Below, piece by piece: positions 1-57,500 of a DNA stretch of 64,000 nucleotides. A program made the translations under genes and the position numbers. The DNA comes from Bugula neritina. Taxonomy: Eukaryota; Animalia; Bryozoa. The notes under the pieces were generated by a model. That model ran no database searches, was not told the DNA's origin, and saw only the letters and a list, made by a program, of their open reading frames with translations. The stretch lies in contig OZ037768.1 of NCBI GenBank assembly GCA_964035545.1, forward strand, positions 7,534,741 to 7,598,740. The letters run 5' to 3'. Numbering within the stretch: position 1 is the first letter of the stretch; every line of letters begins with the position of its first letter.

Positions 1-436
1 TTAACAGTTCCGTTTATAAACTCATTTTTTTAAATATATTTTAAAACTATTTAGGAATTCTTAATTTTTATTTTTCATTCAACATTTTGATTTTCCAGCC
101 GGAAGGACTATCTATTAAAATATTGTGTTAAAATATTGGTATATTATATTACACTCCATATTATTATTCTGATTTACATCTAGAGCCAATTTGTATGCTT
201 TGAATAACATATTGTCCTCTCCTCACCCTAATGTGTTCAAACTGCCAAATGCTCAAAGATTTGATTATTTGCAAAACAAAGTGAAAGTTGTTGAAGCGTT
301 GAGTTTTAAAAAACCAAAGTTGTTTTTTTTTACAATTGTAAAATACACATGAAGACTAGTTTACTGTTGAAATTATACTGTTCATATTTTGAAGAACGTT
401 CCCTTGAAGCATCAAGTCTCTGTTATTTGTTTATAG

Positions 437-8700: not shown

Positions 8701-11658
8701 ATTTGCTAGCATTTAAAACACTTTCATATTTAAATTTATAATATCGTGTGAACGTCAGTGCTCTCACCTAACATATTAATTTCTATATTTTCATTGACTT
8801 TTTTTAACGCAAATGCTAGGAAAACTAATAGTTACTGATTTCAAATCAACATTGATACAATTTCTGTTTCCAAACACCATAAATTTTCATTTGAACAAAA
8901 TATTTTAAAGCCGTATATTTTATTTTATCTTGGAAATATATCATTTTGAATATGTGTAACAAATGAGTGTAGTATTGACAAAATATGTTTGCTGTGTTAC
9001 AGTTGGCAGGATTCTTGGAACTCAGGTTTTCTGTAAGCCGAATGTTAAAATCACAAGAAACCAGTTGAAGAAGAATCCATGGCTAATTCATGACAGAAGA
9101 AAAAGAGAGCGGCTAGAGAATGTGCAGTTTTTCAGCTCCGATCTGGAAACAGCCACAACTTCTGACATGTGAGTATGTAGAGATGGTATGAGTCAGAGTA
9201 ATACTTTACTTGTAACAAGACTGATGTACCTGGAAGGTGTACACAGTATCGGTTGTACAGTTTACAGAGTATTCAATTCTGATACAAGCTCACTTACCAT
9301 ACATATGCCCAGTATAATATATATACTCAGTTTATAAAGTATCCAACTCTGCTGTTTATTTTATAGCGACTCACCCACTATATTACTGGTTGTTGTTTGA
9401 TAAACTCACACTTACTAATATTTATAGTAGAAGAAGTACCTCTCTGCCAGACACTCCAGTTTCCATCCATGATCTGTCATCTCTGTCACAGAATACCTCA
9501 GGTTCAGAATCTGTAGGATATTGTGAGTATTCTATTTTTAACACCTTTACCAGAACATAACTTTTAATACTTTACTTTAGCATAGCATTATACGTAGTGA
9601 TCATTAAGTATAGTTATAATATATAATTGTCTCAATTTGACTGAAGCTACTAACCTCTGTAGTTTCACTATGCCTGCACCTTACCTATCATTTCTTCTTG
9701 TCCTGCTAATTTGTCTTATAAATTTTTATCTTAAAGGTTAATGCTCCTTTCATGTACGGGTATCTGCCTACTGTATATAATGTAGTTTCAAACTTTTGAA
9801 AATCTTGCAAGTGGTTATAGAGCTAAAAAGTTTTTTTTAATATCTGTATGGCTGCATTATTGTTGCAATTTAATTTTGTTGCAATGTGTGTTATTATTTT
9901 ATAGCTGACAGAACGGTAACTTTGAAAAAACATGATGTCGTTATGGATCAACAATGTGGCAGGTAAACACATAATCTTCTTATATAATCTCTTGCACTGT
10001 GTAGGGTCAGTGTTGCTTGTAGATTGTAGCACTACCATAACAGATATACACATGTTTAAATTATAATAAGGAGTTTTCACACCTGTGTTATTTGCTTCAT
10101 GGGAAGTTTGTTTTACAATTTTGTTGTTGCCATATTATTTTATTGAATCCTTAAAATTAAAAAAACAATCTTTCACAGTGGATCAAAGCAAAAAGTTGTT
10201 AAGAGAAAGAAATTGAACCTCTCATGGCTCAGTGATTCAGAAGAAGACTCCGCCCACAAGATGGAGTCACTCACTACTCCAACTGCTCATCCACCTACTG
10301 CTGGAAATATCCAGATGGTGTATCCTATGAATGTGAAAACTATTGAAGTCTCTATCAAAATTCACAGTAAGTTTTTAGTTTCTATAGTAGCGTTACACAG
10401 TTGAGGTTATTTGCTTTTGAAACATTTTACTAGTTTATGCCACCCTTTATCATAGCATTATTATATTAATAAAATAAACAGAATATACATCTTTTCAGAT
10501 AGTTACTAATGCAACAGCATGGCTTTTCAATTCTTATTTGTAGAGCTTATGCTATGAAGCTCCATGTTTTACATCTTTGAAGGGCTAAGATTATATTTTG
10601 TCTTACATTATAGAGGGAACAAGATTTTCTTTTACAAAATGTTGTTTTATCACCTTCTCTCTTCTCCCAGAGCCACTTGCAGAGTGTGTGTATAAAACTA
10701 AACTAGTATGTAGTGTCTTCTCTGTTGTAGCTGAGTCAAACCCTTCCACTAGAATAGTTAACCAATGTGATCCAGCAGAGGGAGGGTAAGTTTCTGTGTC
10801 ATTATATTCAGAGTAAGTCACTAGCGGTTCAGTAACTTACTATGGTTTAGTTGTAGTAATTATTGTGTTGTTTATATTGTGTCTTGTGTTATGATGTGTT
10901 GATGTAGACTCTATCTGCTCTCTTAATAATTATATCATATAATATTTACAGGTCCACCACAATAGTACTCCCTCCAATAGAGATTAATGTGCAATCTAAT
11001 AGCACTAAATCAAAGTATGTATAATCTTAATTTGGTGAATAAGTTTTACGTTGTTAGCAAATGTTTACTTTCCTTTGTGTGGCTTTTAACATTACTGGCC
11101 TTATAGTGAGAGTATTTCCCAGACCTTTGCATAAGTTGTTATGTATTAATTATTGAACCAAAATTTACCAAACTCCACTATGTAGAAGATTTATTAATCA
11201 CATATTACTACTTTTGTGAAAAATTTTATAGATCAGCTCCTGTTTCTGATGATGGTGAGTTTGTAAATCTGTTAATTGTTGAATGTTGGTAATTTTAACG
11301 TTTAATTTTCTTTCGTTACAATTACTAATTTATTAAACCTTAGAATTATTTTTGAACTCATTTAACACAAATCTATGGTGACCCTCAACCCCTGAGGTCA
11401 ACTACCTGTCAGCCATGCTATGAGTCATTATGGTTGTTGATCAATAGAACAGATTCACTATGGTTACATCAAGTAACATATTTGTAGTGTATGTAACCTT
11501 TTCCTCCTGCTCTCTGTTGAGTTCTGTTAAGCCATTCAACTAGTAGAAACACTGCAACGTTGTTTTACTGTTTGTGTCTTTCTACAGGTTCTGGTGCTAG
11601 AGGCAGACTGTCAAAGTTTCAAAAATTTCTAAAAGTCATCAAATTGAAAAAATCATAA
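2711..11658 (+). CDS. Orphan gene A: ~854-aa Lys/Ser/Thr-rich, probably disordered protein built from duplicated exons
   Basis: 23 GT-AG exons chain without a stop (2565 nt): 2711-2760, 3004-3179, 3339-3417, 3685-3812, 4031-4165, 4403-4525, 5158-5283, 5392-5526, 5838-5963, 6241-6357, 6928-7044, 7413-7541, 7805-7921, 8207-8320, 8513-8626, 9003-9168, 9428-9522, 9905-9962, 10179-10366, 10671-10785, 10952-11014, 11232-11254, 11588-11658. Starts MSKQLAKTSDPRSAMPM, ends GRLSKFQKFLKVIKLKKS*. AATAAA at 12400. No domain recognised. Confidence 0.8.
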
Positions 11659-11850
11659 AACTTTATTTGTGTATTCTTTTTTTCTATTGCTCTATCATGT
11701 CTAATTTATTCTCACACAGTTCTGTATTATAATAACATAATTTTTTTACAATTCATTTTTGTATATTTAATTATTTTGGTTGCTGTTACTTTATTATTTA
11801 TATATTTTACTTTTAGGTTTACACTAGAATTATTTATGTTTTCAGGCATT

Positions 11851-12229
11851 TACATAGACTGGGTACCCATGTGTTTGGTGTCTGGGGGTTGGTGGACCCG
11901 GGAGGTGTGACGGACAGTCTGATAAATGTTCTCGGGGTAGGGATATCCTCCTTGATCTGTCACTTTCTTTTGCATTCAGTACTCATCACTGGCTAGATGT
12001 TACTATGCTTTGGCACAGTAATGTAGTGTAGCTTAGCTTCATGACTGACTATGAATCAGTCATTGCACACGAAATCCTACACGGCTGGTGTTTGTGTGCT
12101 GTCTGTATATTGGGGTGCTTTTCTCGCTGGGGTATCGCGGCCCTGACTCACATTTGGACGGCTGATCTTGATCACTGAACGGTTTCATCCTCTCTTTGTC
12201 AACTTACGCATGGGTGCACAGCCTATGTA
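11851..12229 (+). other. Structured 3'-UTR RNA element, copy A (long imperfect hairpin)
   Basis: 11851-11874 pairs with 12206-12229 (20 Watson-Crick, 2 G-U, 2 mismatches), with nested helices inside. 11867-12226 is ~90% identical to 43343-43701. Lies between the gene A stop (11658) and AATAAA (12400). Confidence 0.8.
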
Positions 12230-12901
12230 GTTTTAGTTTATTTATTTTATACATTTTATTTCGTGAAATCAATCTTTCAATAGTTTCAAAGTCTTCCTTT
12301 TTTTATTTACTGTAAATATATTTAATATTTTGTAGGATAATGTAGGACTGTATGAGAGTGAACTAGACATGATAGAGCTACATGCTGTTATCTTTATTAA
12401 ATAAATTTTATATCAACACTCCTATTTTGTGGTTTGTTGTCTGCTAATATTAAAACCGAAACTAAGACATAAAAGGAAAATAAAATTCCAGCTATTTCTT
12501 AAATTTTTATAATGAGATAGGAATTGTCTACTAGCCTAGTGCTAATGATTTTAAAGCAGTGTTAGTTTGCTAAATCGTATCAAACAAAATGTGTGGTTGA
12601 GAAATTATATTCGAATAATTTACACACCTTGTTTATAGTATACAAATTAAGACATTTATTTAATAATATAGAACAATTCTAGCACAATTAAAAAATATAA
12701 TAGACTTGATTAATTTTCACAAACGCAGAACTCATTTAAAACTGTTAGAAGCATATATATATGTATAGGCTATATACATATATATTAGTTTAAATGGATA
12801 CGCAATAAAAATAAATTTATATAAGAAAATCAGATAGGAAATTTGAAAAAAATCAATAAATTTGTAAAAAAAAGCTATAAAAAGTTTTGGTATGCTGATA
12901 T

Positions 12902-15900
12902 TCAAAGCTTCGATTTCTTATCAAATCGACTTGCACGCAGCTCGTCAACAAGTAGTTCTGGCTTTCCACCTTGCACCAACTCAGCCAGCATGTTGCCAAT
13001 CACAGGGGCCATCTTGAATCCATGTCCTAAAATTGGAGAGCAATTGAGTGGCCAATACAAGAATTCACAATGATATTGAATTGTACAGGTGGTACTATAT
13101 TGCATTTAGGTATTGACCTGGCATAAACCATGCCTGCTATTGTCAGTAATTGCTGATTTACATGTAGCTAAACACCTGTGGAGTTGTTTGAGTAGATTAT
13201 AGAAACGTGTGGCCGTAAAAAGTATTGCCAACAGGCATCCAAACATCAGTTATTCTGAAAACAGTGAATACAGATTATAGACTACTATGGTGAGAATTAA
13301 TAAGAGCAGTCAGATTGAGTGATTGAAGTGCTGGCTTAGTAAACACAAGGTCAGAGGGTCAAATCCCGGTAAAGGCCATTTGTAACGTAAGGAAGAGCAT
13401 CTAATCACAATTGGTCTTTTGCCACAATAGAAAACAACTCCACAGTCTAATTTAATCTAGAATTCTCACTGTCTTGGAGACTAGATAAACATGTGAGAGT
13501 TTATGATGATAATCAATACCCAGGCCTACCTGAAAATCCTGCACCAAAGGCTATATTTCTATGTATTGGATGATGATCTACGATGAATTGGTTGTCAGGT
13601 GTGACCTACACAGGTAAAAAGAATAAACTGATTTATACAGCATTAAACATTTGAAAAGGATTCAAAGAAGAAAATAGTATTGCTATGAATGCACAATATA
13701 AAACAGGATATGTGAATGCAAATGAGAGAGGCTTTATAATATAAGTATTACACAAAAAATCTTTCTACTGATAAAAACCTAAGCAGGTTTACAACGAGTA
13801 TATTACAATTGCCATAACATGCTTTAATGTAAAATTAAAATTATCAGGTATTGAAATGAACTGCTACAAATCGGCAGCAAAAATGCACCAGACACACTGT
13901 TGTGGACTCATCATGTTTTCTTTAGAGTTTAGCTTCTACAAAACTTATATAGATGTCGCTACATCTTCTCTACTTACAGTGTACATGCACCTTTCTTTTA
14001 TTGCTGGTTCTGGCACCAAATATGGAAAAGTAGAAGTTACAAATTCTGTTAGTATTTTCAAATTCTTAGCTTCAGCTTTGCTGTCTGTATTATCTCTCAT
14101 GTCTGGACCATCACAGAGAACGCCATAGTGCAAGCATATCTTAACAAAATAACAGTTACACCATTCAGTCAAAACATTCAGCAAATTATCTCTATACTTT
14201 TACAGTATTTCAACTCAAGCTCTAAAATGAATAATGATATATGATATATATATATATGATATAATGAGGTGCAATTAGATAATTAATTAACTATTTGATT
14301 AATTAAAACGAATGTAAAGCTGATAAGAAAATTGCTATACAAAAACCCTTCACAACATGTAAAGTAAGCTGCAAGCAATAACAATGGGTCACGTAAATAG
14401 TAACTTCTAACTTAAATATTTTAGTAGCATTATAAACTCACGCAAGTTTATAGTCGCTATCCCTGTGAGAAACCCCTGATGGAAAGGGTTTTTGTTAAAG
14501 CGGGCTAAGGACTTATTCAGATGAGACACAGGAGCAATTATGGCTAGATGCTTTCCCTAACATCACCAATGGCCTTTGTCCGGCTCGAACCCATGACCTC
14601 ATGTTTACTAGGAAAAACGCTCTAACCCCTAGACCACGGGGGCGGGAGGGGAAGGTTTAGAGCATTTGCCTAGTAACTTATTAAAAATATAGTTGCACAT
14701 TTATACAGTCAACATCTACAAGCGTCTTTTTAATATCCATTGTCTCCTGAAGTTGTGTGCACAACTACTTTGACTATACTAGATATGCTAATCTAACAGA
14801 CCTACTATAGTACCTTCATTAGGCCATCGTATTCACTTGTTGGCATGCCATATATATCTGATATCTCGTCTAAAGATATAAACAGAGGAAGACTGCTGTG
14901 ATCAACTCCATTTCTAGCTTTCCAATAACACACTTGAATGGCCATAACCTAAAGCAACATCACAGTGTGACGTGATTACACGCTTAGATTTAGTCCGAAA
15001 AACATCTTATACACTAAACATACATGCTTTAAATAAATGCAAATGAATAACATATTTGCTAATCACAGTTGTTGACATAATAGCAAGTGGCTTGTGCATG
15101 AGTAAAATAGTGGAGTAAGTAAACACATAATGATATAGAACAAACTTGAATATCATTCCACGTTTGAATAAATTAACTGACTTGCAATGGCAAGCTGATT
15201 CCTAAATCTGAAAGAATCTCAGAAGACCAAGCACCACAAGTTATGACTAATCCTTTAGCTTGAAAGTCTCCTCTATCAGTATGAACAGTCACCACACCCC
15301 CTGTAAACCCAACAAATGTGAAATAGCCTGCACAAATAAACAATATAGCAAATTAAGGTTGAAGAAACAATATAATATTTTAGTATATGTAATGATACCA
15401 CAAAACATTATTCAAGGCAAACTTCTGTTGACTAAAACGTTGAGTATGACGCTAAGTTAACATATCAACACATTTGACCCCTAAAAACTTTTTCCACTCC
15501 TACCTGGTGTTATGCGCTGAACTTTACACATGTCAATAATTTCCCCTCCTCTCTTTTGAAACATTTTCTGCAAACAATAATGGCCCATGAAAAGCAAAAC
15601 TCCTGACGGGCTAAATTCAAACTATTCAGATTAATAATTAAGACAAGTTTTCTGTTAGTGTTATATCAGGTTATAAATATCTATAGTTGAAACTAAATGA
15701 TGATGCTACTATATGTAGTATGTTCAGAATGAAATCACAGTAAATACTAAAAACTGACTTGAAAAGCCATGACACACTTGTCAGCATACAGAATGCCAGC
15801 TGAAGAGTCGAAGCAAGCCTTTTCTTCTGCCGGGTAAGACATCAAAGGGTAACGCTTAGAGATCTCTGCAGAGTCTATAATTGGGACTGGCCCAGTGTTG

Positions 15901-16693
15901 TATCTCTGCAATGTCTTTTGAGTATCCACCAGCTCTTTATGCAATGTGGAAGTAGTACATAACAGGCCGGTGTGTCTATGTGTAATATAAATATATCACT
16001 ATTAAACTGTACATTCAGCGTGTTAGTGCCTTGAAATATGATACTCTTAATTATATGCTGAAACTTCAATGTATTCACATCTACAATTCAAAGAATTACC
16101 CAACACAACTAAGAGTTTCGGAACTTATATCAAGTGATGTTACCGTATTTGTGAAGAAAACTAACTTGAACAGTGTGGTTTCTGCTTCCTTCTCCAAGTC
16201 TTTCCACATGGAATTGCCTACAGCCATGATACTTCCGTTGAATTCTTCAGGATATGCTGTACGGGTGATACGACTGGCTCCGTGAGAGCTCCCTCTGGTG
16301 TGTGGTATTGGGAACTATGAAGTTAAGTTGCCGCATCAACTTGGAAGGTGGTTGAAGTTTATTTATTTTACACAGGACACAAATATATCTATCCTTTATA
16401 AAACTAAATTCTATCAGCATTTTTGGTATCATGTGCGAGCTTTAGTCATTACAAGTTCATTACCTACATAGTATTATTTTGTTGACTATATAGTATTATT
16501 GAGTAAAATATTTGAAGTACAAAATGCATTGGTCCGTTCACATTATGCCAGCAGAAAGCCATAAACTATATTAAAGCAAGCCATTCTTCTCAGTTACCTG
16601 TTCTAAAAGCAAAGTCTTCTTTCCTTCCTTGGCTAAAGCATAAGCAGTAGAGGAGCCCATCACCCCAGCTCCAATTACAATGTAGTCATACAT
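12902..16693 (-). CDS. PIPOX: Peroxisomal sarcosine oxidase / L-pipecolate oxidase, paralogue 1 (~380 aa)
   Basis: Nine exons: 16693-16598, 16314-16166, 15975-15759, 15567-15504, 15300-15182, 14948-14814, 14139-13978, 13605-13530, 13026-12902. Motifs: [17 protein letters not shown] (FAD-binding GxGxxG), [32 protein letters not shown]-terminal SKL (PTS1). Confidence 0.93.
13303..13510 (+). mobile_element. tRNA-derived SINE, diverged copy
   Basis: Degenerate B-box (GGGTCAAATCCC) followed by AAAGGCCATT...AGGAAGAGCATCTA...ACAATTG, homologous to the reverse complement of the copies near 14.5, 37.4 and 59.4 kb. The 3' half differs. Confidence 0.6.
14434..14640 (-). mobile_element. tRNA-derived SINE
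   Basis: ~200-bp dispersed repeat (ATCCCTGTGAGAAACCCCTGATGGAA...ACATCACCAATGGCCTTTGTCCGG...), also at 37342 and 59341. The minus strand carries the Pol III B-box GGGTTCGAGCC. Confidence 0.8.
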
Positions 16694-27830: not shown

Positions 27831-30800
27831 TTTTGCTTTCCCTAAAAGAAGTTTATTAAATTTTATTTTTAAATAAAAGTAATTCAAGTAGAGATTTTAG
27901 GTATAAAAGACTTACATTGTGAATAAAAATTAAGCGAGTCTAAGTTTTTTTTATGAAGCTAAATGACTGTAAAAACTACTAAAACTTACATAAACAAACT
28001 TCGTAGAAAACAAATGCTATACTTGCAGTATCAAAGTTCCTTACCTGGTATTACTATTCTGCCTTGTATTACTATTCTGTCTTAAAGTTTCGCTTAGAAT
28101 GCCGGTTTACTATAGTTTATCAGCTTATATATAAATGCAGATATTTGCACAAAGTCTGTTTACATAGAACCTGGGGGGCGTATTCACCCAAGGAGCCTAT
28201 GATATGATATCTAAGGAGCATATATGATAGTCAATAATTTGCTATCAACGGGGTTGTACATAGAAAATCTGAATGCTCATAAGATGAGAAGGCATAATTG
28301 TATTCATAACCTCATTCATGACAAAGCTACTCCTAAAGAGTAAAGTTATCACTATAAATGACTAGCAACTAGCTTTATCTATTGAAAATTGGCCTCACAT
28401 TGCTAAAGAAAAGCTTATCAAGTGCATCGTGAACACATATTTTGGTTTATTAGGCTATTATATCTTAGGTGTTGAACTAATATCTGGGTCATCTATGAAT
28501 TATTTGTGTCTAATATCATTGCCCTATCTTACTGCATAAAATAGTTTTATCAGAAGTGAACATATTTTAAAAAAGAGAGGAATAAAAGTTTTGTATTATA
28601 TGCATATATAATATTGTCTAAAAAAACTGCTCAAATTTTTATAAGATGTAACATTGTAACATCTAGACTTGGCCATATTTTACTTTTATATCTATGATGT
28701 TATATTCTTGTCGAAGCTATCCTAGACAGTAGTAGATGTAAACACACCTTAAAACTCTGTGCTGTTAAAAAGTTATAGTTGAAAATTACCAGTTTTATGC
28801 ATAAATTTTTCCTCTTTTATTCTCATGATTTTAAGAGCTTAACTTTCAAATACATAGGTGATCATCAGCCATGTACTAATATTTCGAAAGAACAAGTAAC
28901 ATTGATTTTATTTCAAAGTGTGCTCATGCGATCAAAGTTGACTTATGCAAAAGTTTAGATAGTAATTTTATTATCATAGCTTATGCAAACAATATTTGGT
29001 TTGGTTTAAAATAGATAAATTTTAATGGAGATAGAATCACAAATATAAGATATGATAAAACTACTCGGCCAAATTCACCCTTAAGTAAACAGTGTATGCT
29101 TGAGATCTGAGTATAAAGTAACAGATATACACAATAAAATAGTCTGAAAATCTGTAACGATTTCATTTATAATATATTTAATAAGTTAACTTCTAGGGAC
29201 ATTAGCTTTTCTTATATTCAGTGTTGAAAAGTTAAGGTGGCCCTTTAAAGTATTTTAAATAAACAGGGTTAGTAGAAAGTGAAGAGCAGCTGTTTTCCTA
29301 GTTGGTGTAAAATTAATGGGCAAAACTATTATAGAAATTGTTTCTTACACCACTAACCATTTAGTTGCATATTTCTAATTGTAACTCTGAGCTGTTATGG
29401 TATAACATTCGTATCTAATACATACTTTACCTTCTGGTAACACACTTCAATTTACAACATTTCTAAAATAAGCTATTAATTGTTTCTCATGTTTATTGTA
29501 TTAGACTTTTGAAATTTTCTTTTTAGACTTCCAGTTACACCAATAAATACTGTGCTGAAGTTCCACAAAGCTTTCTATTCTTCATCTACTTCCTGCATTG
29601 TTGAATTAAGCAAAGAATATCTAGATTTGATAAATATTGGACAATAGTTAGTTAGATTTTAGGTGCACTATAAACTATTTGTAGCCGGTTATGAGGCACT
29701 AATTAGCAGAATATCATTCAAAGTAAGTATGCCATACCTAAGTTTTTTTTCAGCAGGAAATGTTCACATACACATACAATATAGCAGACTGGTTATAGGT
29801 ATTTCAAGGTAACCTGGTGAAACCTGTAATATATTTAAACAGGCCCAATTCAGCCTTATAGGTGACCTGTATAGGCGAATTAAAGGCATAATATTTCAGT
29901 AAATTCATTGAAAATTTGTGGGGAAACAGAAGAGTTATGTAGCATAGCTGTTTAAGTTTATATTGTGTTCATAAAGTGTGCAAAAACTATATGCATGTTG
30001 ATCATTTGTGATGACTGTTCTTTTTAGTGCAACAAATCTTACGAGTCTGTATATATTGAAATTCTTTACTAATGCCAAATTAAGACCTAGCTATCATTCC
30101 TGGCTACAGTTTGGTATCAGTTGGCAGAGGTTATAAATCACAGTAGTCAGGTCTTTGTGATCAATTAATCGTGTTTAAATCTTATTAGTTATTATATACG
30201 TATGCAAGTAAAAATTAATACACAGTTGACCATGTTTAAATATGCAAGTAAAAATTTGTGTTTACATAGGCTTGAAAACTTCTTACGTTTATTAAAAGAT
30301 GACAACTCCGGCTGTTTTAGAGTAATATTCTTTTTGTAGCTGTGTAAATTACATTGGTTTTCACATTTAAGTGAAATTCACGTATTTTAACTATATTCCA
30401 TTTAATGTTTAAGTGTATACGTTCTTCCCTTTTAGTTTCCAGACATGTTTACTGAGTAAGGTATTATTTCTTTTATTTATATGTTTGAAGGAGGCTTCAT
30501 GATTATTATATCTAGTTTTGAAAGTTGTTGAACAAGGTCTGATGTAGGATTGGCAGAGTCGCTTATATATTTCTAGATGGTACTTAGATATTTATTGTGC
30601 GACTTGTAGTTTCGTGCTTTTAGCTCTTCTAGCACTCATCGGGCACATTGGAAATTTAAATTATTACATTAAGTAATTCAACAAGTGAAACACAATATGC
30701 AAATCAGGGAATGGTTGTTAGGTTATTAGGCTATTAAATATCATGTAGTATATATAATTGTTGAGTTTTCTGGTTACATAGTAGGAGTTTGTTTGAATGT

Positions 30801-32039
30801 TGACAGGTTGATAGTAGTTCATTCCTTTTGCTTAATGTGCACATGTTGGACTTGTATAAAATAAAAATGACATTCCCATAGGCACAGATTCCATTGTTTG
30901 GTAATGCTATTGTATGAGTTTGGTTCTTTATATTATATTTAAAGTATCTCAACTTATAACTTGAGTCGCCAAACTTCTGCTAGCCGATATTTAAATAAAA
31001 GAACTTTTTCCATATCTGCATCAACCTTTGCACAGTAGATAAAATTATGGCTAAAAACATATATATGCATGTGTTCAGATTAAACGGTTATTGAAACCAT
31101 TACATGCTATTACTTACTTTTCCAGATTGGTGTTGCTTTTTATTTGGACTTGCTGTTTAGTAACTGCTTAGTACAGAATTATGCAGGTTATGTTGTGCTA
31201 TGGAGTTTCAGTTCCATTAGATATTTGGTGCATGCTTTAATGAGAGAAGTTGCATTGGAAGAAGGCGTGAATTTGTTATACTTTGCTATAAATAATTTAT
31301 ATTACATATAAATTAAATTAAAATCTGCAACAAATTGAGAAATTATTGAATTGGTGGTGGAAAGACATTAGGTCTGCAAAGGGAAATAATGTTGAAATTA
31401 CTTAGTACTTCGTAGTACCTCTTTGAGGTAGACTAATACGCATGATCTCACTTGGTACATGAGAATATGTAAGGTGTAGGCCTACTAGACATGTTGTTAG
31501 TTAAAGACTAAAGGATTTTAGTATTAATAGAATACTTAAATTTACAGTTTTAAATCCTTACTTCAGAAAGTTTTAAACAAATTATAACTTCAGACAGCAT
31601 ACAAACACCAGCCATGCATAGGATTTTGTGTGCAACAATAACTGAATCAGTCTTAGATTCTGTTTTAATATAAGCAGGCAAACCATAAAGTAAGAGTATT
31701 GAAATATGTGTTTAGCCTATTTAATAAAAAAAATAATATGTAGCTTTTTACAAACAAAAAAAACCATAGCACCTATAATAACAGTCAAAGAATATGTGGA
31801 AATAACACATTCAATTTCTAATATACAACAATTTAGACATTTTATTTTATGTATGCAAGGTAAAAACAATAAATGTCGAGTGTTCCATGAAAAGACATTA
31901 TGACATTAGTGCGATCAAAGTTTTTATATAGACTTGATGCTTTAAAAATACTGAGCATTAGATAGTTACAACACAATAAAGGATAAAAGAACCACAGGTA
32001 AGTTTACAGAATAAACAAATTATTTTCAACAGAATAATA

Positions 32040-32830
32040 TATCCTTAAAAACTTAACTATAGAGTAACAAAGTAACATTTGGCTCTATCATGTCTAGTTC
32101 ACTCTCTTACAGTTCTACATTATGCTACAAATTATTAAATATAGTTGTAGTAAATAAAAAATGAATTTTGAAAATATTGACATGTTGAAGAAAATAAATT
32201 AAGATATTGAAACAAAATAAACTAAAAAATACATAGGCTTTGCGCCCATGCTTGAGTTACCAAAGAGAGGATTGAGCTGCAATAAGAGAATGTCTTTCTA
32301 TCTGTGCAGTAATGTATTGTATATTTATTTACATGAGGTGAACTCAATGGAAGAAGGAATATTAAAATAAAAAGAGCTTGCACCCATGTTTAAGTAAATA
32401 AAAACATACAATTTCGCCTAATTCAGATTATACATACTTTGATTGAGTGTTAACATTCAGCTCTGTGGGAGGGAGTTTGATTGCGGTGGACCAGTAACAT
32501 AAGACTTCACAAGATTAAGAATATATATACTTTGACTAAGTGTTAACACATTGCACATTTAGCTCTATCAGAAGTAGTCTGATGACTGTGGTGGACCTGT
32601 AATTTATATTATACAAGGAGTGAAAAAAAGTCTTAAAAATAATGCATGAAGAATTTGGTGAACACACCGGTGTTCAGGTTATATAAATGCATGAAAATAT
32701 AAATAACCTGTGTTAATAACATACAATTTCACCAAATCCAAATTATACATACTTTCATTGAGTGTTGACAGAGGGCACATTTAGTTCAATCAGAGGGATT
32801 CTGATGGTTGCGGTGGACCTGTAAATATTA
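32040..32830 (-). pseudogene. Relic third member (C) of the orphan A/B family
   Basis: Three tandem copies (~32818-32753, ~32596-32531, ~32491-32438) of gene A exon 10952-11014 with its intron flanks; two carry in-frame stops and one has a mutated acceptor. They are followed by a gene-B-like 3'-UTR piece (32395-32271) fused to a gene-A-like 3'-UTR piece (32272-32082). Confidence 0.75.
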
Positions 32831-35439
32831 TATAAGGACTGAAAAATAATCTTATAACTAATGCATGAATAAATTTGGTAAGCGCGTCAGTTTAGGTGTA
32901 ATAATAGCATATATATAGCCTATATGCAGTCTGGTAGGCAAATACTTAAGTAGCAGCAACAAAAAGTGAAATTAAGTAAAACAAATAATGAAAGTAAATT
33001 TTATTAGCGTAGTGCAAAACTGTGTGAGAATGCAGGAGACATGACTAAGCTATAAACTAATTAATGGTTAAAAAATAATTTTTTTTTTACTTTTTTGAAC
33101 CTGCATAATTGCTTTTAATATTTATAAAATTGTAGGTGGCTTAAATATGCATGATTTATATTCACTCATAACATCTACTTGCATTTTGATAGGTAAATAC
33201 TTAATAACAGTAGCAAAAAATCAACAAAATTTGAGTTGGATTATATTATTATAATACAGAACAAAGTCATGTTTAACAAATTATTTAAATTAGTTCAACT
33301 TGTTGTAGTGTCTGCGTCTTTTTACTAACTCAATATTTATCAAGCTAGTCAGTCAGCTTTGAGAATTGATACAATAAAAGGATATTGACAACAAGTGAGC
33401 TGATGGTTTCAAAATTAAAAGAAATGCATGCGTTACCGTTACTGATACTTGACATTTCTCTACGGCAGATAGTTTGCCCATAGTTATTTTCTCATCTTTA
33501 TAGAAACCAATACTATTGTAATTAAATGGGTAGAAGCAATAGGACTTGGCTGTCATGTAAGTGCTAAATTAGCTGAGTTTAAACAAAACTTTATAAGCTT
33601 TACCAGCATTGGTGATGTTCTGCAGTTTTTCAGTAGCAGGAATAATAAACTAACAGAATATGCATGACTTTGTAACACAATGTAAGGATTTTTTAGTTTT
33701 AGCAATTAAAACTACATGGTACTGTCCTATCAGTTTTATAAGAGTAACTGATCAACTAATATATTATATGGGCCAACCCAACAGTATGTATTTGTGGATG
33801 TATACCCAATTAACCTAGTGAAATGTAAGGCATTTTATTAAAGTTAAATAAATGCTATTTTATTATAAAAAATACACAACTATAATAGGGCAATCAAGGA
33901 AATTGGTAGCCAGCATGCCTTAATCACCGTGGTGCAGTTGTTACAGTATTATTATGACGTTAACTCCTTCTGCAGGTAAATGTTGAGTAGTTTTTTTATT
34001 TAGTTTTTTGGTCTAAATGAATTTTTATTCTTCTGTTAGGGTTTGTGTTTGAAATGCAGTTAGTTTGAAGGTGAAACACATTTAGACCTACTCTAGGTGG
34101 TTTCATTTTACAACTACTTTTAGGCCAATGCTTTCAAATAAAGAAGAACCTGTTTTAGCATGTTTGCATAAATTGGTGTCATTTTTGTGGTGGGTGACAA
34201 GGTGGTTTGTCTAAATAATAGGTAGTTTGTTATGCCATAGTCATTATTTCTTTAAAACTAAAAGTTTATATGTATAATAATGATTAGTTTTTTGTAGACC
34301 TTCTTGTTCTAATTGTATATATAATATATATAAATTTACTAGTGGAAGTTTAGAGCCATGTTAATTGTTACATAATTAGTAACTCTGTGAAGATTGAAAT
34401 AGCAGCTTCATCATTCATTCTAGATACACTTTGTTTCCAATTGAACCATTCTTATTCACTAGTTTCTACAGAACTGGTTATTCTCAATCATTGATAACAA
34501 AAAAACTTAGTAGTTTATTTTTCTAATAAAAAACTCTTATATAGCGGAATCAGTTTTCATCATTTTTTAAATAGACCTGTACTCAAAATTCGCCACCTAT
34601 ACCTTGAATTTTTTCTTTTCCCAATACTTCATATAGCTGTAAGACTGTAAGAATAGCTCCCTGCAGCAAATAGGATATTGTATTGTTTGCAGGTTATATC
34701 AAAGTTATAGCAATTAAACTGAGTTATTTATTTCACTGTCTGAGTCAGTCTAGTGTTGCCAACAGACGTGTTTTCAGCTTTTAAAGATGTATCAAGTTCT
34801 GATTCAGTTTGCATACTTCCCATCTATAATACTTGCATATCAATTTTTAACTCTAGCAAAACAGTAGACCATAGCCTACCCACTGACTGTGATATATTCA
34901 CTGTCTTTTATTCGAATGATATTCTGCTAAAACCCATCAAATGTTCAACAAAGTTTATTATAACAACATGTCTTGTTACTCAATGTATTTATTACCTTAC
35001 TTATAAGGAATATTGTATTTTAACTTTTGTAAAAAAATAAAAATAGGTTATGCTCATTTTTATATACGATGCAGTTGTGGCAATTATTGTTGAATGCTTT
35101 TAGTATGCTACATTTGGCCATTATCTTTTAATGTATAATTTATGTGCAATAAATACCCCAAAAACTAAAACTAAAAGGTTTTATATTTATTTAGAGCAGA
35201 AATTAGTATAATTACTACAATCTGTAACAGCCTCACTAACGAACAAAAGATGGAATGACATAGTTCTCATTGGCTATTCTTTAAAGCATTGAAATGAAGG
35301 TGATGTGCAGTGATATGGTACTAAACTCTTGTAATTTGTTAACAAGCGATTTGTTATATAATAAACAAATTAATTATTTACAACTTGCAAAATTGTATAA
35401 TCAAAAATATTTTTAATTGAGTAGCTAAAACAGCAACAT

Positions 35440-38600: not shown

Positions 38601-41600
38601 ATTGCGTCTAAGAAGGAAACTAGTTGTGGAGAATCTAAGATGTGAGTTTGGCATACTTTATTGTAATTTTTTCAATTGTTCAATTGACTCAGACACTTAA
38701 TGATGCATATAAAGATTTTCCATGTCATTTCATTGTGAAATACTTCCAAGTCCAATTATTCTGCGGTACTTGCTGCAGGAGTGAGTCACAACACGAATTG
38801 ATGACAGAGTTGAATGAGCAAGAACCAATCAAAGATCTGATTGCTGATGCAGAGATGGAAGATGATGCAGAAATTCCCGAGGAGATTGTTACCATTTCCT
38901 CCAAGACTGCTAAACCTCTAGAGCTATCGCATGCTTTAAATGGTAAAACTTTAACTTCCATATTGGTAAGAAATAATAAAGGTGTTGCTGCTGTATTGGC
39001 ATTGTAACTAATAATGTAGCTTTTAACTGCATTAAGCTTTGGTATGTATTTCAATTTCTCACAATCCCAATGTATCCAGATGTGAAAAGCAACAAGAGAG
39101 TTGCTTCGGCCAGAGTGGGTAGACTGAGACCACTCAGGAAATTGTCCAACGATGTGAAGTTGGAAGATGATGCAGAAATCCTTGAAGATACCATGGACAT
39201 CTCTCCTAAGACTGTTAAGCCTGTAGAGCTCTCACCTGTTTATAATGGTATAACTTTACTTTTTATTCTTTATTTTATAACAAATAGCAAATCATTTTGT
39301 TATTGTAATTAACTGTTCTGAATTTATGTATATGTTTCATATTTACTGAAAGAGTTTGAATGTATCCAGATGTGAAAAGCAACAAGAGAGTTGCTTCAGC
39401 CAGAGTGGGTAGACTGAGACCACTCAGGAAATTGTCCAACGATATCGAGATGGAAGATGATTCAGAGATTCCTGAAGAGATCATGGACATCTCTCCTAAG
39501 ACTGCTAAACCTGTAGAGCTCTCACCTGTTTCAAAAGGTGTCATTTTAATTTTTATGCTGTATTTATTAAAAAAGATTTTGTTGTTGCATTGGTGTTGTA
39601 ACTTATCTTACTTTATATTTCATAGCCAGTGAGTGGTTGTTGGGGCACCACAAATGAGTTGAAAAGCTCCCCCCAATTCTCCCACCACCCCCCCCCCCCC
39701 CCCCGACTGCCGGCCTTTCACTTTTCTCCAGATAGTGTTGAGAGTAATATGGTCTACTCTTGGACATTGTCTTTACAACGTTTCCTCTACTTTCTTTATC
39801 CTTGACTTTCTGATATCATCCTTTGAATAATGGTGTTTTCAAGGTCATGTGATCTTGTAATATGCTCATACCATTTCAGTTTAAGTGAGGAGGTTATTAT
39901 AGCATGCAAAGCCCTTTAGATTTGGTTTGGAACTAGCTTCTTCATTTGTCTGTATGGTATTTTTGTATAACGTGAAAAATGTTTGGTACCATCTTATTTC
40001 CAAGGCTTAATTGAAGGTCAGCTGTGAGCCCAATCAGTTGGATAAAGAAGGCTGATGTCAAAAGAATTGCAGTAGTCTGATTTTGTGCTTGCTGATAGTT
40101 TTGTCTTTCCAGGTGATGAAAGTCCTTATCACTAGTTTGTGGTCACTTTCTATGTCTCCCATTCAAAAGGTTCTGGTTTTGGCAATATTGATATTCTTTA
40201 CCATAATGTAATCCATTCAGGGTGATGTTCTAAGTCTATTTCTTATGTGTAAACAGACAAGTTTGATTGCCAGAATGAGGCTGTGAACTCCAAAAGTCAT
40301 AATCCATTGTCATTGGTTGTTGGTGTAGCTAATAATGTAATCAGTGTTTTTGAACTTAGGTGTGTATTTCACTTGTCCTGAATAAGTTTTAATGTATCTA
40401 GGTGTGAAAAGCAACAACAGAGTTGCTTCAGCCAAGATGGGTAAGCTGAGACCACTCAAGAAGTTGCCCAACCGTGTGAAGTTCGAAGATGATTCGGAAA
40501 TCATCGAAGAGATCATGGACATTTCCCCTAAGGCTACCAAGCCTCTAGAGCTCTCGCCTGTTTCCAATGGTATAATCTTACTTTTAATTTTTTTTGTTTC
40601 TGCGTTGGCATTGTAACTAAGAATAATTGTAATTAAATGCTTTGAACTTATGTATGTATCTCATATTTACTGAAAGAGTTTGAATGTATCCAGATGTGAG
40701 AAGCAACAAGAGAGTTGCTTCAGCCAGAGTGGGTAGACTGAGACCACTCAGGAAATTGTCCAACGATGTGGAGTTGGAAGATGATGCAGAAATCTTTGAA
40801 GAGATCATGGAAATCTCTCCTAAGGCTGCTAAACCTGTAGAGCTCTCACCTGTTTCTAATGGTATATATAACTTTACTTTCTATTTTTTATAAAAAATAA
40901 AAAAGAATTTGTTGCTACATTAGCAGTGTAACTAATCATTGTAATTAACTTTTTTGAAATTATGTACTTATTTCATGTTTTCTGAAAGATTCTTAATGTA
41001 TCCAGATGTGAGGATTAACAAGAGAGTTACTTCAGCCAGAGTGGGTAAACTGAGGCCACTCAAAGAATTGTCCAACGATGTGGAGGTGGAAGAGGATGCA
41101 GAAATCCCAGAGGAGATTGTTAACATATCTTCTAAGACTGCCAAATCTCTAGAACTCTCGCATGTCTCTAAGGGTATGTCTTAACTTTTTATTTTTTATA
41201 AGAAATAAAAAAATTGTTGCCAAATGGTGGTGCATAATAACTTAGAAACTTAGTTCACTTAAACTCTAAATTAAATGTTTGTAATTCGATATTAAACTTA
41301 CTTTTACAGAGCGAGTCCTTATGTATCCAGATGTGAGGCGCAACAAGAGAGTTGATTCAGCAAGATCGAGGCAGTAAGCCTGTTTTAAATTATTTATTTT
41401 AGTATCTTTAGGTTAACATCTTCAGCTAGTTGGCTAATTAGTAAGTTACTGAAAGTTAAAAAAGGATTTAACAATTCACCCTTTTCCTTATATATGTTTT
41501 TGCATACAGCCGGTATAAGTAATTGAAATTGTGATTTTTATAACAATGAAATTGTGGTGGTTACAACAATAGACTCACTATAAACCACACCCATCATTTT

Positions 41601-43148
41601 ATAGATTTTAAATATAAAACTTGCATGTGCATGCTTTTATTAAAACCTATGTTTATTGTTATCAAATATGTATGCATGCTACCCAATAATACGATGTCTG
41701 GTAAAATATACTAGCTTTGGCTAATTTCTGTTTCTTAGCGCCACATACGGTAGTAATACTAATGATAAAATGTTGTATCTTAGGAAAGTAAAGCCCATTC
41801 ACAAGATGAATTCTGATATTGCTACAATACCAGAGGAAAAGGATGTACTCTCTGAAAGTCCTTGGTCTTGTAAGCATCACATAATTTTTCTTTTTACAGA
41901 GTAAATTGCTGAAATATAATTACTGAAACATTGCTTAGCTCTGTTGTGTGTGACTATGAAACAATGTTGTCTGGTAAATTCCGTAAAACTGAAATATACT
42001 GATAGGCAAATGCAGAAATGACTAAAATGAGCTGTATACATGATCTGTGAATTTTTGTTAAGAGTTGTAACGTATTTAATTCTAGCTGACAGTCCATTGA
42101 GAGTGTCCTCGGCAAGCATAACCAGTACTAGGACACCTGACATGTAAGCACTTTTATTATATTCAAAGAATTGTAACAACTGCTGTTATTTATTATGTAC
42201 AATAATGTCTGTATACTTTAAATAAAGTTTCTAAAAAGATGCAGCTTTTTTAAATTGTGAAGTTATTTATTTTATTGCAAAATTAACTGCGCATCACCTG
42301 TTGCTTGTTTTCACAGAAATAATATTATCCAGATGCTCATTGTGACACTGTTTTTGCTTTTAGTAAACCTAGTGATGTTCTTAGAAGTCCTACACCAATT
42401 GATATGGACACCACATGGCTTAGTAAACAGGAGAATGCAACCATAACAAGAATATCTCCTTCTATAAATTCCATAGATGGTAGAGAAGATGGCCACCAGG
42501 TCAAAACAAGTAATGCAGTGAAACCAAACACCAATTTTCAGAGTAAGATTAACTATTAATGTTTTGACTTTTTTACACACCTGTATTTTTATACCACAGA
42601 AATATTATTATGACAGTTTAAATCTTTTCTAGCTTCTGATATTTATATATTAGTTGAAAATATTATTTTCAAAATCGGTGCTTTTAAGTGCCCTTTGCCG
42701 CCTGCTTATGTTATTTGTTTTTACATATTTTTAGAAGTAAATAAAAGCATTTTCTTGCATTTAAAAGACATTCAAACTTCAATTTTAAAATACGTTAAAA
42801 TTGAACGGCAAGGCTAATCATATAAAATATATACATGCTTTAGTATTTTTTCTATTCTCACTTATCTCCGCTTTGTCCTGTTCAGGTAGCGGGATATACA
42901 TGCTTTAGTATATTCTTCGTAAATGTTGATACATTTATTTTTGTTTATTAGGTTCTGGGGATCTTGAAATTATTGGTAAAAGTGTTCTTTCTAAACCTTT
43001 CCCCCCACAAAGACAGGCCAATAAATACTTGCAACAGCCTTACATTCCACGACCACCAAAAAATGCAGAAGTAAACACTGTTGCTAAAGCTAACCGTGAA
43101 GCTTTGAAAGCGATTAGACTGAAAAGAATGAAAAGGCAGGCAAAGTGA
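35609..43148 (+). CDS. Orphan gene B: ~729-aa charged repeat protein with five 56-aa exon-encoded repeats
   Basis: In-frame chain (2190 nt): 35609-35789, 37009-37063, 37180-37304, 37707-37743, 37937-38106, 38581-38641, 38779-38942, 39080-39247, 39370-39537, 40402-40569, 40694-40861, 41006-41173, 41310-41373, 41784-41869, 42333-42542, 42952-43148. Possible extra exons 41510-41518 and 42086-42143; structure near 42.1-42.3 kb is ambiguous. Ends EALKAIRLKRMKRQAK*. AATAAA at 43802. Confidence 0.75.
37342..37535 (-). mobile_element. tRNA-derived SINE, diverged copy in a gene B intron
   Basis: Homologous along its length to 14434-14640 and 59341-59545. Confidence 0.75.
39625..40310 (-). mobile_element. 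Decayed 3' fragment of an RTE-clade LINE
   Basis: Minus strand ~39882-39750 reads KLKWYEHITRSHDLENTIIQ...RKRCKDNVQE*T, resembling the RTE ORF C-terminus (LKWYGHVTRS.GLAKTILQG...KRWEDNIKEWTG), then a GTGGTGCCCCAAC tail. It enlarges this intron to 864 nt versus 122-144 nt for sister introns. The upstream boundary is approximate. Confidence 0.7.
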
Positions 43149-43300: not shown

Positions 43301-43732
43301 GAAGACAGCATGTGCTCAGAGATGAAAGAATAGAATGAATATCCATGTGTCTGGTGTCTGAGCGTTGGTGGGACCGGGAGGTGTGACGGGCGGTCTGATT
43401 AATATTTTCGGGGTAGGGATAACCTCCTTGATCTGTCACTTTCTTTTGCAGTCAGTACTCATCACTGGTTAGATGTTGCTATGCTTTGGCAGAGTAATGT
43501 AGTGTAGCTTAGCTTCGTGACTGACTATGAATCAGTCATTGCACACGAAATCCTACACGGCTGGTGTTTGTCTGCTGCCTGTATATTGGGGTGCTTTTCT
43601 CGCTGGGGTATCGCCGCCTGACTTATATTTTGATGGCAGATCTTGAGCGCTGAATGGTTTCATTTTCTCGTAGTCACCTTAAACATGGGTGCACAGCCTA
43701 TTTAATTCTGAACTGAGTACATGCTGAACTTC
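43301..43732 (+). other. Structured 3'-UTR RNA element, copy B
   Basis: 43343-43701 is ~90% identical to 11867-12226. It is closed by a B-specific stem, 43306-43319/43713-43726. Lies between the gene B stop (43148) and AATAAA (43802). Confidence 0.8.
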
Positions 43733-54500: not shown

Positions 54501-57500
54501 GTAATGGAGAAGTTGAGAAAAGCCTGTGTTCTAGATTAGAAATGGAGCAAAAGAAGTTATGTTCTCGCAAGAATTTCAACCCGTGTCCCAAACCAAAATT
54601 TACCAATAAAATTAAAGAACTTAGGCTATCTCAATTTCTCCACTACTGCTCCTAAAATAATTTTTTTAAAAATATTTTAGTCTCACTTGGCTTTTATCTC
54701 CCAAGCAGCCTTTAAATGATATGAGAGTGTGTTGAATAAACCAACCTAACACAGAGAAAGTTACGAATCAGTAGCGTATAGTGGGTCATTTGGAGAATTG
54801 TATTTTACAGAAAACATTGACAAATCAAATTAGCTTCATTTTCCATAAAAACATAATATACCCAACACCCCAGCATTCCCTTTTTATTACAAAGCAAATT
54901 ATCACAAAAACATGTACAATTTATGTATTTCCCTTTTCCTATAGACAAAACAGACAGCTACCCAAGCAATAAGCAACACTTTGGTGTCCCTATTCCCCAA
55001 CAACTTTTCCTTGTGTATTCAATAACTAGTGATTATAGGAACAATAGTTTACATGAGGAGACAATGAATGATTTGTCTGAAAGCAGTCAATATTACTCAT
55101 TGAATACAAACAGTCAGTAAAAACGAACTTGCTTATTGTAATAACAGGCCCATTGTGGAAGTAGTAAATATTCATGCAAATTGAAGCTATGACATAACAG
55201 TATAGCAAAATGCAGCTAGCTCTGTATGCTGAGACAAATGATAGAAATACCTCTTCAGAAAAGCCAACCAAGTCCATAGCATTCTGTAGCTGCTCAAATC
55301 TGTTTTGGTAGAAAGTGGCATCAGCTGTCTGATCACATGACTTGGTGTATCTGCAGGGGGGGATAAAACTAAACATAAGTGGGTATTGCATTATTTCAGG
55401 ATAAAGACGCAATGTTCTGCTGCAGACATAAGATATCAGGTGACAACTAAATGGTGGAATTGTGAACGTAACACACACAAAATATTTACTAATCTTTACC
55501 CTAATAATTTTGAAAACATCAAATTACTAAATTATACACAATTACAGTTATAAGCATAATAAAACCTCAAATATGATAGCATTTTTCGCTCAATTTAAGC
55601 ATAATTCCGATCTGAAGTGAAATCTTACTTTCCTTAATAATCAACATATAGCATTTTACAAAAATACATAGAATAGAGGGGCATCTGTCTTTCAACCTAC
55701 TAAATCATCACCAACAGAGAAGTGAGGTCTTCCACTCACATAAATTTGTACTACTGACATGGCCTTGCTTAAATTATATGGTTATACAAGGACTCGGAAA
55801 ATTTGCAATGAGATATGAAAACTAGGGATAAATTATTCACTGAAAAAGGAGGCTGTTATGACAATTGTTATCAATATTATTTGTGTAGAAAAAAATGACT
55901 TTACAGCACATCACTTATGATCGAATTAGACACTAAATAAAACTGTAAATGTTTTAAAGCTGTGGGTACACAACTTCTGATATACCATAACATAATGTGC
56001 CAATATTATTTGACACATAATGGTGATAGCAAATCTCCTTTCAATTGAACATATAAATAATGCTAACCTATAATTTTCATGGCTGCCAAGTTTGAATGTC
56101 TTGCGCTGTTCCTCACTGCATCCGGCAAACATGTAGTTGAATATATGAAAGTTGGCATCTCCTGCGTTTTGATGGACAACTCTGGATTTCTCCAAGAGAT
56201 ACTCACTTATTTTGGCTCCCACCACTATCAGTAGATAATACACACATTATAGTGTGTAAAACATTTCAAATTTCTATGGGACTAAACATGACACATTATA
56301 GTTTAGTAGTACGTATGAGTTAGTAGTGTGTGTGAGTCACTGTTAGTAGTATGTATGAGTTAGTAGTATGTGTGAGTTAGTAGTATGTGTGAGTTAGTAG
56401 CATGTGTGAGTTAGTAGTATGTATGAGTTAGTAGTATGTGTGAGTTAGTAGTATGTATGAGTTAGTAGTGTGTATGAGTTAGTAGCATGTATGAGTTAGT
56501 AGTACGTATGAGTTAGTAGTATGTGTGAGTTAGTAGTATGTGTGAGTTAGTAGTATGTGTGAGTTAGTAGTATGTATGAGTTAGTACGTAGTATGTGTGA
56601 GTTAGTAGTATGTATGAGTTAGTAGTGTGTATGAGTTAGTAGCATGTATGAGTTAGTAGTACGTATGAGTTAGTAGTATGTGTGAGTTAGTAGTATGTGT
56701 GAGTTAGTAGTATGTGTGAGTTAGTAGTATTGTGAGTTAGTAGTATGCGTGAGTTAGTAGTATCTGTGAGTTAGTAGTATGTATGAGTTAGTAGTATGTC
56801 CTAGTAGTTTTGCTGAGGTGGAAGGGATGACATGCATGACTCATACAATAAGAATAGGCAAAAATGTTGATTTGCCACTTGAAGCTTGCCAACGCCACAC
56901 CCATTGAATAAATTGTACCATTACAGTATTGGTATTAATAAACTTCCTTTTTTGGAACAATTAAAATTGCAATGCCAAACACAATAAACATGTATTATAG
57001 TAGACCAGGACTGCGAGCACACACAGAGTAGGCTGTACCTAATCTACTCTCTACTGTGCCCTTGATACTAACTACTGACAAATGAAACTCAACCCATGTA
57101 CCATGTTTATACATTGTTTAAAATAATGACATAACTGTCACATGTGTTTAGCTTGTAGCAACACTCAGTTTATAACAGATAGCCTGAGAACCTACTTCTT
57201 GTATATTACATAGTATTAAGCTGTGGTATAGTCAGTAATAACTGCTTGATTTAATTAGTAAATTATTTAGTAAATTTTGTGATTTGGTGAAAAAAGTTGA
57301 AAAATCAGAAATAGAAATCTGGCACTAAAACTGTCTATTTAACAGAATGTGCATAAAATGAGACTCAAAGCATGCAGTTCGTGGTGTGGAGAACTTAGAG
57401 CTGGTTTGTTTATAACCTAGGCCTATATCCCTCCCTGTAGGACCTGATGTTAATTGTTTTGGGGGGGGGGGGGGGAGGGGCTCAAACCATGCTGGCAACA

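Follow-up and report, generated by a model that had tools for sequence, protein, structure and literature searches.

Introduction

Long double-stranded RNA (dsRNA) within the 3' untranslated regions (UTRs) of animal mRNAs, as formed by inverted Alu pairs, the ADAR-edited hairpins of C. elegans and Staufen sites such as that of the bicoid 3' UTR, is bound or edited by dsRNA-binding proteins. In Drosophila, hairpin-RNA (hpRNA) loci that give rise to endo-siRNAs have long, near-perfect stems, the arms of which derive from the target genes. Transcribed hairpins may also be MITE-derived: a MITE in the 3' UTR of rice Ghd2 represses translation (PMC5338036), and the MADE1-derived mir-548 genes encode MITE-derived miRNA hairpins (PMC1784062).

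The subject of the present analysis is a hairpin element from the bryozoan Bugula neritina that resembles each of these systems in part. It lies in a stretch of 64,000 nucleotides, referred to as the window (C4:7534741-7598740), and was followed through a genome of 216,009,554 bases in contigs C1-C9. Like the animal 3' UTR dsRNAs, from which the working mode proposed below is taken, it is a mismatch-interrupted, imperfect duplex of more than 100 pairs in a 3' UTR, but unlike inverted-repeat pairs it is one compact, self-contained hairpin common to several genes, and is known from sequence and RNA contigs. With Drosophila hpRNA loci it shares a long transcribed inverted repeat and a setting of lineage-specific, fast-evolving, clustered genes, whereas its helices do not exceed 12 pairs and its arms match no other gene. 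MITE-derived 3' UTR hairpins of the Ghd2 and MADE1 kind are, like the element, a few hundred bases long, end in terminal inverted repeats, are transcribed with the host and form a long hairpin, and both they and the element would be expected to act in cis on the host mRNA. Those families, however, are dispersed in hundreds to thousands of near-palindromic copies with target-site duplications, while the element has about ten clustered copies with arms only ~59% alike as DNA, and G-U restores their pairing solely on the mRNA strand.

Fold and transcription of the element

The minimum free energy (MFE) fold of the + strand of the best-characterised copy, copy A (Table 1), has 131 pairs involving 262 of its 379 bases (69%), 25 of them G-U (19%), at -148.4 kcal/mol, and its longest uninterrupted helix is 12 pairs. 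It is a nearly unbranched rod ending in two apical hairpins (columns 147-174 and 176-232, the latter enclosing 191-213), and the centroid has about the same structure. The original prediction, folded by hand, had described a rod with a forked apex, and all of its listed helices, including both apical hairpins, recur in this fold. None of 100 dinucleotide shuffles folds as well (mean -115.3; z -6.5), and the sense strand is clearly the better folder, the - strand reaching -103.1 kcal/mol (z -3.5) and retaining only the terminal stem and the apical hairpins. The competing local helix noticed earlier is also real (columns 51-64 with 106-118), and substitutions at columns 54, 62 and 64 leave it paired; RNAalifold favours it only when a truncated copy (L007) and one with a deletion (L005) are added, and the rod predominates in the copy A ensemble. 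A conformational switch operating through this helix is speculation. No Rfam family was matched within 10000-14000 (cmscan, E up to 1) apart from a single chance CRISPR-repeat hit outside the element, nor was any match to the element found in the phage collection searched. The element contains no conserved open reading frame, a 45-codon candidate at 12041 being set aside since its ATG is present only in copies A and L002.

Table 1. Positions of the element, its copies and adjoining features. Plain ranges refer to the window, columns (cols) to the aligned element, and identities to copy A.
Feature	Position	Strand	Description	Basis
Element copy A	11851..12229	+	379-nt rod-like hairpin, forked tip	fold and shuffles, RNA contigs
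Parts of copy A	cols ~1-146; 147-232; ~233-379		left arm; two apical hairpins; right arm	
Gene A last coding exon	11588..11658	+	stop TAA 11656-11658, 192 nt upstream of element	translation, contig-supported joint ~11588
Gene A 3' UTR outer stem, left arm	11689..11730	+	42-nt inverted match, 83%; ~120 nt T-rich spacer before rod	
Gene A 3' UTR outer stem, right arm	12337..12378	+	RNA contigs stop here (12368-12377)	
Element copy B	43328..43704	+	89.1% identical; structure degraded	
Left outer extension of copy B	43301..43327	+	CAGCATGT... motif, common to L004/L005; pairs with 43705-43727	alignment, blastn extents
Right outer extension of copy B	43705..43727	+	...ACATGCTG motif, common to L004/L005	
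Decayed element fragment (cols 213-255)	31591..31635	-	inside degenerate third family member	
Decayed element fragment (cols 337-379)	32230..32272	-	followed by sequence like gene A downstream flank	
L002	C4:7477450	-	97.6% identical	
L003	C2:14756866		96.3% identical	
L004	C4:5331031		96.6% identical	
L005	C4:5322560		95.4% identical; 29-nt deletion	
L007			truncated copy	
L008, L009			decayed copies, 288-292 nt	

Transcript evidence for gene A, the spliced gene upstream of copy A, comes from Logan contigs of four public runs over 9300-13200. GT..AG splice joints on the + strand (9522/9905, 9959/10176, 10366/10731, 10784/10951, 11014/11232) delimit a series of small exons (9431-9522, 9905-9959, 10176-10366, 10731-10784, 10951-11014, 11232-11254), with the last exon starting at 11588. 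One contig (X6 record 22, 11591-11948) carries the last splice joint and then runs unbroken into the element, another (X4 record 19, 11877-12368) passes through it, and a third spans 12119-12373; the stretch 12444-12836 is covered by none of the four runs. Since the spliced last exon is continuous with the element in one contig, the element belongs to the mature 3' UTR of gene A and is present there, as part of a spliced + strand transcript, in the orientation in which it folds. A 3' UTR location had been claimed for both of the orphan genes that carry the element in the window, and for gene A the RNA contigs bear this out; for gene B the location is read from sequence only. Loose contig ends at 11813/11817, considered as an alternative upstream exon, are absent from the window and match a 10-nt insertion of an L003-type paralogue. 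Mismatches in the contigs, from which partial editing is dropped, show no excess of A>G (15, against 16 T>C, in X1).

The 3' UTR of gene A also contains a 42-nt outer stem, about 110-120 nt from the rod on either side, which is found in A and L003 and is not recognisable in L002. Downstream, - strand exons at 12902-16078 belong to what we take to be a sarcosine/pipecolate-oxidase-like (PIPOX-type) gene, which ends in the peroxisomal signal SKL and is convergent with gene A, their 3' ends lying ~500 nt apart; it stops near 12902 and does not overlap the element.

Copies, flanks and host genes

The element occurs at ten places genome-wide, about six of them good copies and four decayed, and five of the ten fall in a 113-kb cluster (C4:7.465-7.578 Mb). 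L002 and L003 carry gene A exons and flanks and are, hence, gene duplicates. In blastn, their homology to L004, L005 and B ends exactly at the element boundaries, whereas B, L004 and L005 have a further 25-30 nt per side in common, which make an additional outer stem. L008 and L009 combine a gene A-type upstream spacer with adjacent outer flanks of the B/L004 type, a mixture that points to a larger 3' UTR unit with old homology and counts against independent insertions. They were also considered as a source of covariation and rejected, the rod having been lost in them (-79 and -70 kcal/mol on the two strands).

The host genes themselves give few points of contact. Nine exon translations from genes A and B, searched singly, matched no Pfam family, and exon-by-exon tblastn among genes A, B and the L004/L005 gene revealed no protein similarity outside the gene A family. 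Last exons nevertheless have features in common in every context, namely the phase in which they open, a G-(S/A)-G or G-A-K at the start and a lysine-rich tail at the end, which may hint at distant paralogy of the host genes, in a stretch too short for a test. The orientation of L004 and L005 relative to a putative transcript is presumed from an upstream open frame that resembles a last exon.

Copy B begins 179 nt past the stop codon of gene B (43146-43148), with an AATAAA near 43802. The original prediction counted some 35 differences between copies A and B and held that several keep pairing; the number is in fact 41, but the pair-keeping changes are there, with A-U to G-U in both apical hairpins (columns 152/169 and 191/213) and a compensatory G-C to A-U change at columns 78/301. 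The fold of copy B as a whole is no better than that of its shuffles (z -1.4); ten of its pairs are broken, nine by transversions. This copy is decaying and its structure is not conserved.

Several other repeats were noted in and around these loci. Gene B (38852-41365, +) includes a tandem array of five or six 290-312-nt units, in each of which an exon-like frame encodes a repeated module of ~60 residues (MYPDVKSNKRVASARVGRLRPLRKLSND...) matching no Pfam family. At 42826-42905, a segment of ~50 nt lies between direct repeats of ~18 nt (ATATACATGCTTTAGTAT); candidate matches to it number over 130 in the genome, at 87-98% identity, and it resembles a tiny high-copy insertion with a long target duplication. 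The - strand at 30500-33200 holds a degenerate third family member, with three tandem segments like gene A exon 5 (~32441-32815), the two decayed element fragments of Table 1, and stretches like the downstream flanks of genes A and B. A tandem array with a 17-nt unit, in at least 21 overlapping register copies and with strong positive GC skew (+0.21), occupies 56264-56781, and a 100-nt direct repeat, 91% identical and possibly a short interspersed element, occurs 45 kb apart at 14484-14583 and 59390-59489. Outside the window, a 5'-truncated LINE-like reverse-transcriptase fragment (L015:9579-9900; G000:C4:5331579-5331900), with more than 110 genomic copies at 87-97% identity, was considered as an empty-site test for L004, but it starts ~170 nt downstream and does not adjoin the element. 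A 21-nt tandem repeat (CATAGACTGTGTACCCACCAC) at L028:3019-3124 (G000:C3:10813282-10813400) has a unit like the element's terminal motif and is otherwise dissimilar.

Pairing on the mRNA strand

Aligned as DNA, the two arms of the element match at 84 of ~142 positions (~59%). The transition mismatches between them are, on the + strand, 21 G-U and one A-C (binomial p 1e-5), which amounts to 21 wobble oppositions on the + strand and one on the - strand, and U-U oppositions outnumber A-A by 15 to 1. The G-U asymmetry, put forward originally as a sign of selection on RNA, is therefore strong, and argues for constraint on the RNA strand and not on a DNA palindrome. The sense strand of gene A is generally T-rich (AT skew -0.14), so that mutational skew could add to the excess of both G-U and U-U.

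Substitutions among copies offer a second view of the same constraint. With changes taken as independent events against the majority consensus, and each column change counted once, since a single event may reach several copies by conversion, single transitions in Watson-Crick pairs of seven copies kept pairing on the + strand (as G-U) 19 times and on the - strand (as A-C) three times (p 0.0009), a count independent of ancestral state; in unpaired columns the matching classes (C>U and A>G versus G>A and U>C) number five and eight (Fisher p 0.007 against 19:3). On the same counting, stems show 43 single changes, of which 24 keep the pair, against ~30% expected at the transition/transversion rates of the loops (p 0.0003; p 0.025 with a transition share of 0.67). 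Pair-breaking changes on the mRNA strand are under-represented.

The consensus of the five full-length copies in RNAalifold is again the rod (132 pairs, -140.6). Covariation, by which the structure was to have been checked, is weak: only three pairs, two in B (columns 3/377 and 78/301) and one in L005 (98/280), are altered on both sides and still paired, and in RNAalifold the contribution of covariation is close to zero (-0.2) because the copies are 87-98% identical. The + strand outperforms the - strand relative to shuffles in A (z -4.7 with 40 shuffles, -6.5 with 100, versus -3.4), L002 (-6.0 versus -3.0), L003 (-3.4 versus -1.9), L004 (-5.8 versus -1.5) and L005 (-5.2 versus -3.2), but not in the degraded B. 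Both B (z -1.4) and L003 (z -3.4) have lost pairs and four further copies are wrecks, which means that the constraint is not uniform.

Conservation and gene conversion

Between A and L003, divergence is 3.7% in the element and ~17% in the 40 nt directly upstream (seven positions); by 100-nt bins, the element is 94-98% identical and the adjoining flank bins 71-76%. The best-conserved coding exon of the gene A paralogues has 84% protein identity. The element is, then, the best-kept part of this gene pair, and evolves at a rate several times below that of the neighbouring UTR, and more slowly than the top coding exon. RNA contigs from other strains point the same way, with differences at 2/251 and 1/106 nt inside the element (0.8-0.9%), where the contigs may be collapsed across several copies, and at 6-8.6% in the flanks.

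Structural constraint alone is insufficient to explain this, since the loops of the element are conserved as well as the stems. Gene conversion accounts for a demonstrable part of the uniformity among copies: L002 has A-sister flanks, yet six of its nine differences from A are common to copy B, 100 kb away (p 1e-4), which indicates exchange between the copies. The copy tree is star-like around A, at 2.4-4.6% for five copies. Conversion alone could keep the copies alike; such homogenisation seems to act side by side with selection against changes that break pairs.

Origin of the element and alternative readings

These properties also bear on a reading in which the element is the relic of a low-copy, non-autonomous inverted-repeat transposon in a 3' UTR, either a Tc1/mariner-like MITE with a TA target or a foldback element; the hairpin would then be a by-product, the copies would be kept alike by palindrome-promoted gene conversion, and the G-U excess would reflect a mutation skew linked to transcription. 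We regard such a relic as possible, if rather unlikely. The element does end in terminal inverted repeats (TACATAGACTGGGTACCCATGTGT and the reverse-complemented 3' end agree at 21 of 24 positions), gene A family members have a TA at either end of it, homology between contexts stops precisely at the element ends, and the dissimilar proteins of genes A, B and L004/L005, the star-like tree, the conversion among copies and the equal conservation of loops and stems would all be expected. The flanking TAs, however, pair mutually and lie inside shared sequence, which leaves no clear duplication: the flanking bases read TA...TA in the gene A family, TG...TA in L004/L005, TG...TG in L008 and GA...TA in B, in each case within shared homology and mutually pairing. 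There are only ~10 copies, clustered instead of dispersed, and three of them share flanks by segmental duplication, while L008 and L009 join the flank types of different contexts, as expected of old homologous UTRs. No empty paralogous site was found in the genome, and no family or autonomous partner with the same ends. A pattern search with the terminal 19-mer gave matches with 0-1 mismatch only in the known copies and at one unrelated site, and looser matches have no inverted partner within 3 kb. Beyond the ends, the arms agree as DNA at only ~59%, and the 19:3 transition bias, absent from the element's unpaired columns, is one that general mutation skew does not explain. Membership of a known MITE family with target-site duplications had been named as one of the outcomes that would refute an RNA-level reading; no family sharing the ends came to light and no duplication is clear. 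The few clustered copies, the missing empty site and wider family, and the shared TAs do not support a typical MITE. Origin from a single inverted-repeat insertion, possibly MITE-like, is possible.

An improbable alternative is that the element is a small-RNA precursor, of the hpRNA endo-siRNA type or a miRNA-like cluster, which enzymes of the Drosha or Dicer type would excise from the 3' UTR, destabilising the host mRNA as well. A long hairpin transcribed on the sense strand would suit this role, conservation over the full length, loops included, would suit small RNAs of fixed sequence, and MITE-derived miRNA genes are known (PMC1784062). But the helices have at most 12 uninterrupted pairs, with 19% G-U, pre-miRNAs would need longer hairpins than the apical two, Rfam yields neither a miRNA nor any other family, and RNA contigs traverse the entire element, so the mRNA is at least partly uncut. 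Searches of the whole genome and the window for sequences like either arm returned only copies of the element, which leaves no target of the hpRNA type. The analogy with hpRNA loci drawn at the outset consequently breaks down on two hallmarks of such loci, a near-perfect duplex and arms homologous to a target gene, neither of which the element has.

That a rod RNA replicon of viroid-like or retrozyme-like type might have been captured in 3' UTRs as DNA, to give the element, is barely credible, for although an unbranched rod of ~380 nt, 69% paired and with many small loops and a competing branched conformer, has viroid-like architecture, 10000-14000 holds no ribozyme or other Rfam family (E up to 1), the copies are single without tandem arrangement, and their flanks were duplicated together with the element.

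Possible function and significance

The explanation we lean towards, tentatively, is a long, imperfect RNA hairpin, transcribed and specific to the sense strand, that forms a conserved module in the 3' UTRs of a few bryozoan-specific genes, most of them clustered, and that is selected as a cis-acting dsRNA platform. Interruption at least every 12 pairs, together with the richness in G-U, fits a protein platform better than a dicing substrate. In such a scheme, the rod would be read in cis by dsRNA-binding proteins, perhaps of the Staufen or ADAR type, and the bound proteins would set the localisation, stability or translation of the mRNA, while the rod, its helices limited to 12 pairs by frequent mismatches, would make a poor substrate for dicing. 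The module would most likely have started as an inverted-repeat insertion, possibly MITE-like, in an ancestral 3' UTR, and may have spread by gene duplication and conversion.

A bolder version of the platform reading, which we consider unlikely, would make the element a self-contained RNA-structure cassette of viroid-like architecture, under selection on the mRNA strand and the most conserved part of a fast-diverging cluster of bryozoan orphan genes. Conversion would move this cassette among 3' UTRs, where it would serve as a shared post-transcriptional handle, acting on localisation or translation through dsRNA-binding proteins, of a kind undescribed in lophotrochozoans.

Should the element be a mere transposon relic homogenised by gene conversion, the case would be an ordinary one. 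If the rod is a selected module, this gene family keeps its non-coding tail far more strictly than its proteins. The locus would then be a clean natural case of an inverted repeat turned RNA structure, in which one-strand G-U saves the pairing while the DNA palindrome has decayed, and it would provide an entry to dsRNA-based control of mRNAs in bryozoans, a phylum with almost no RNA biology.
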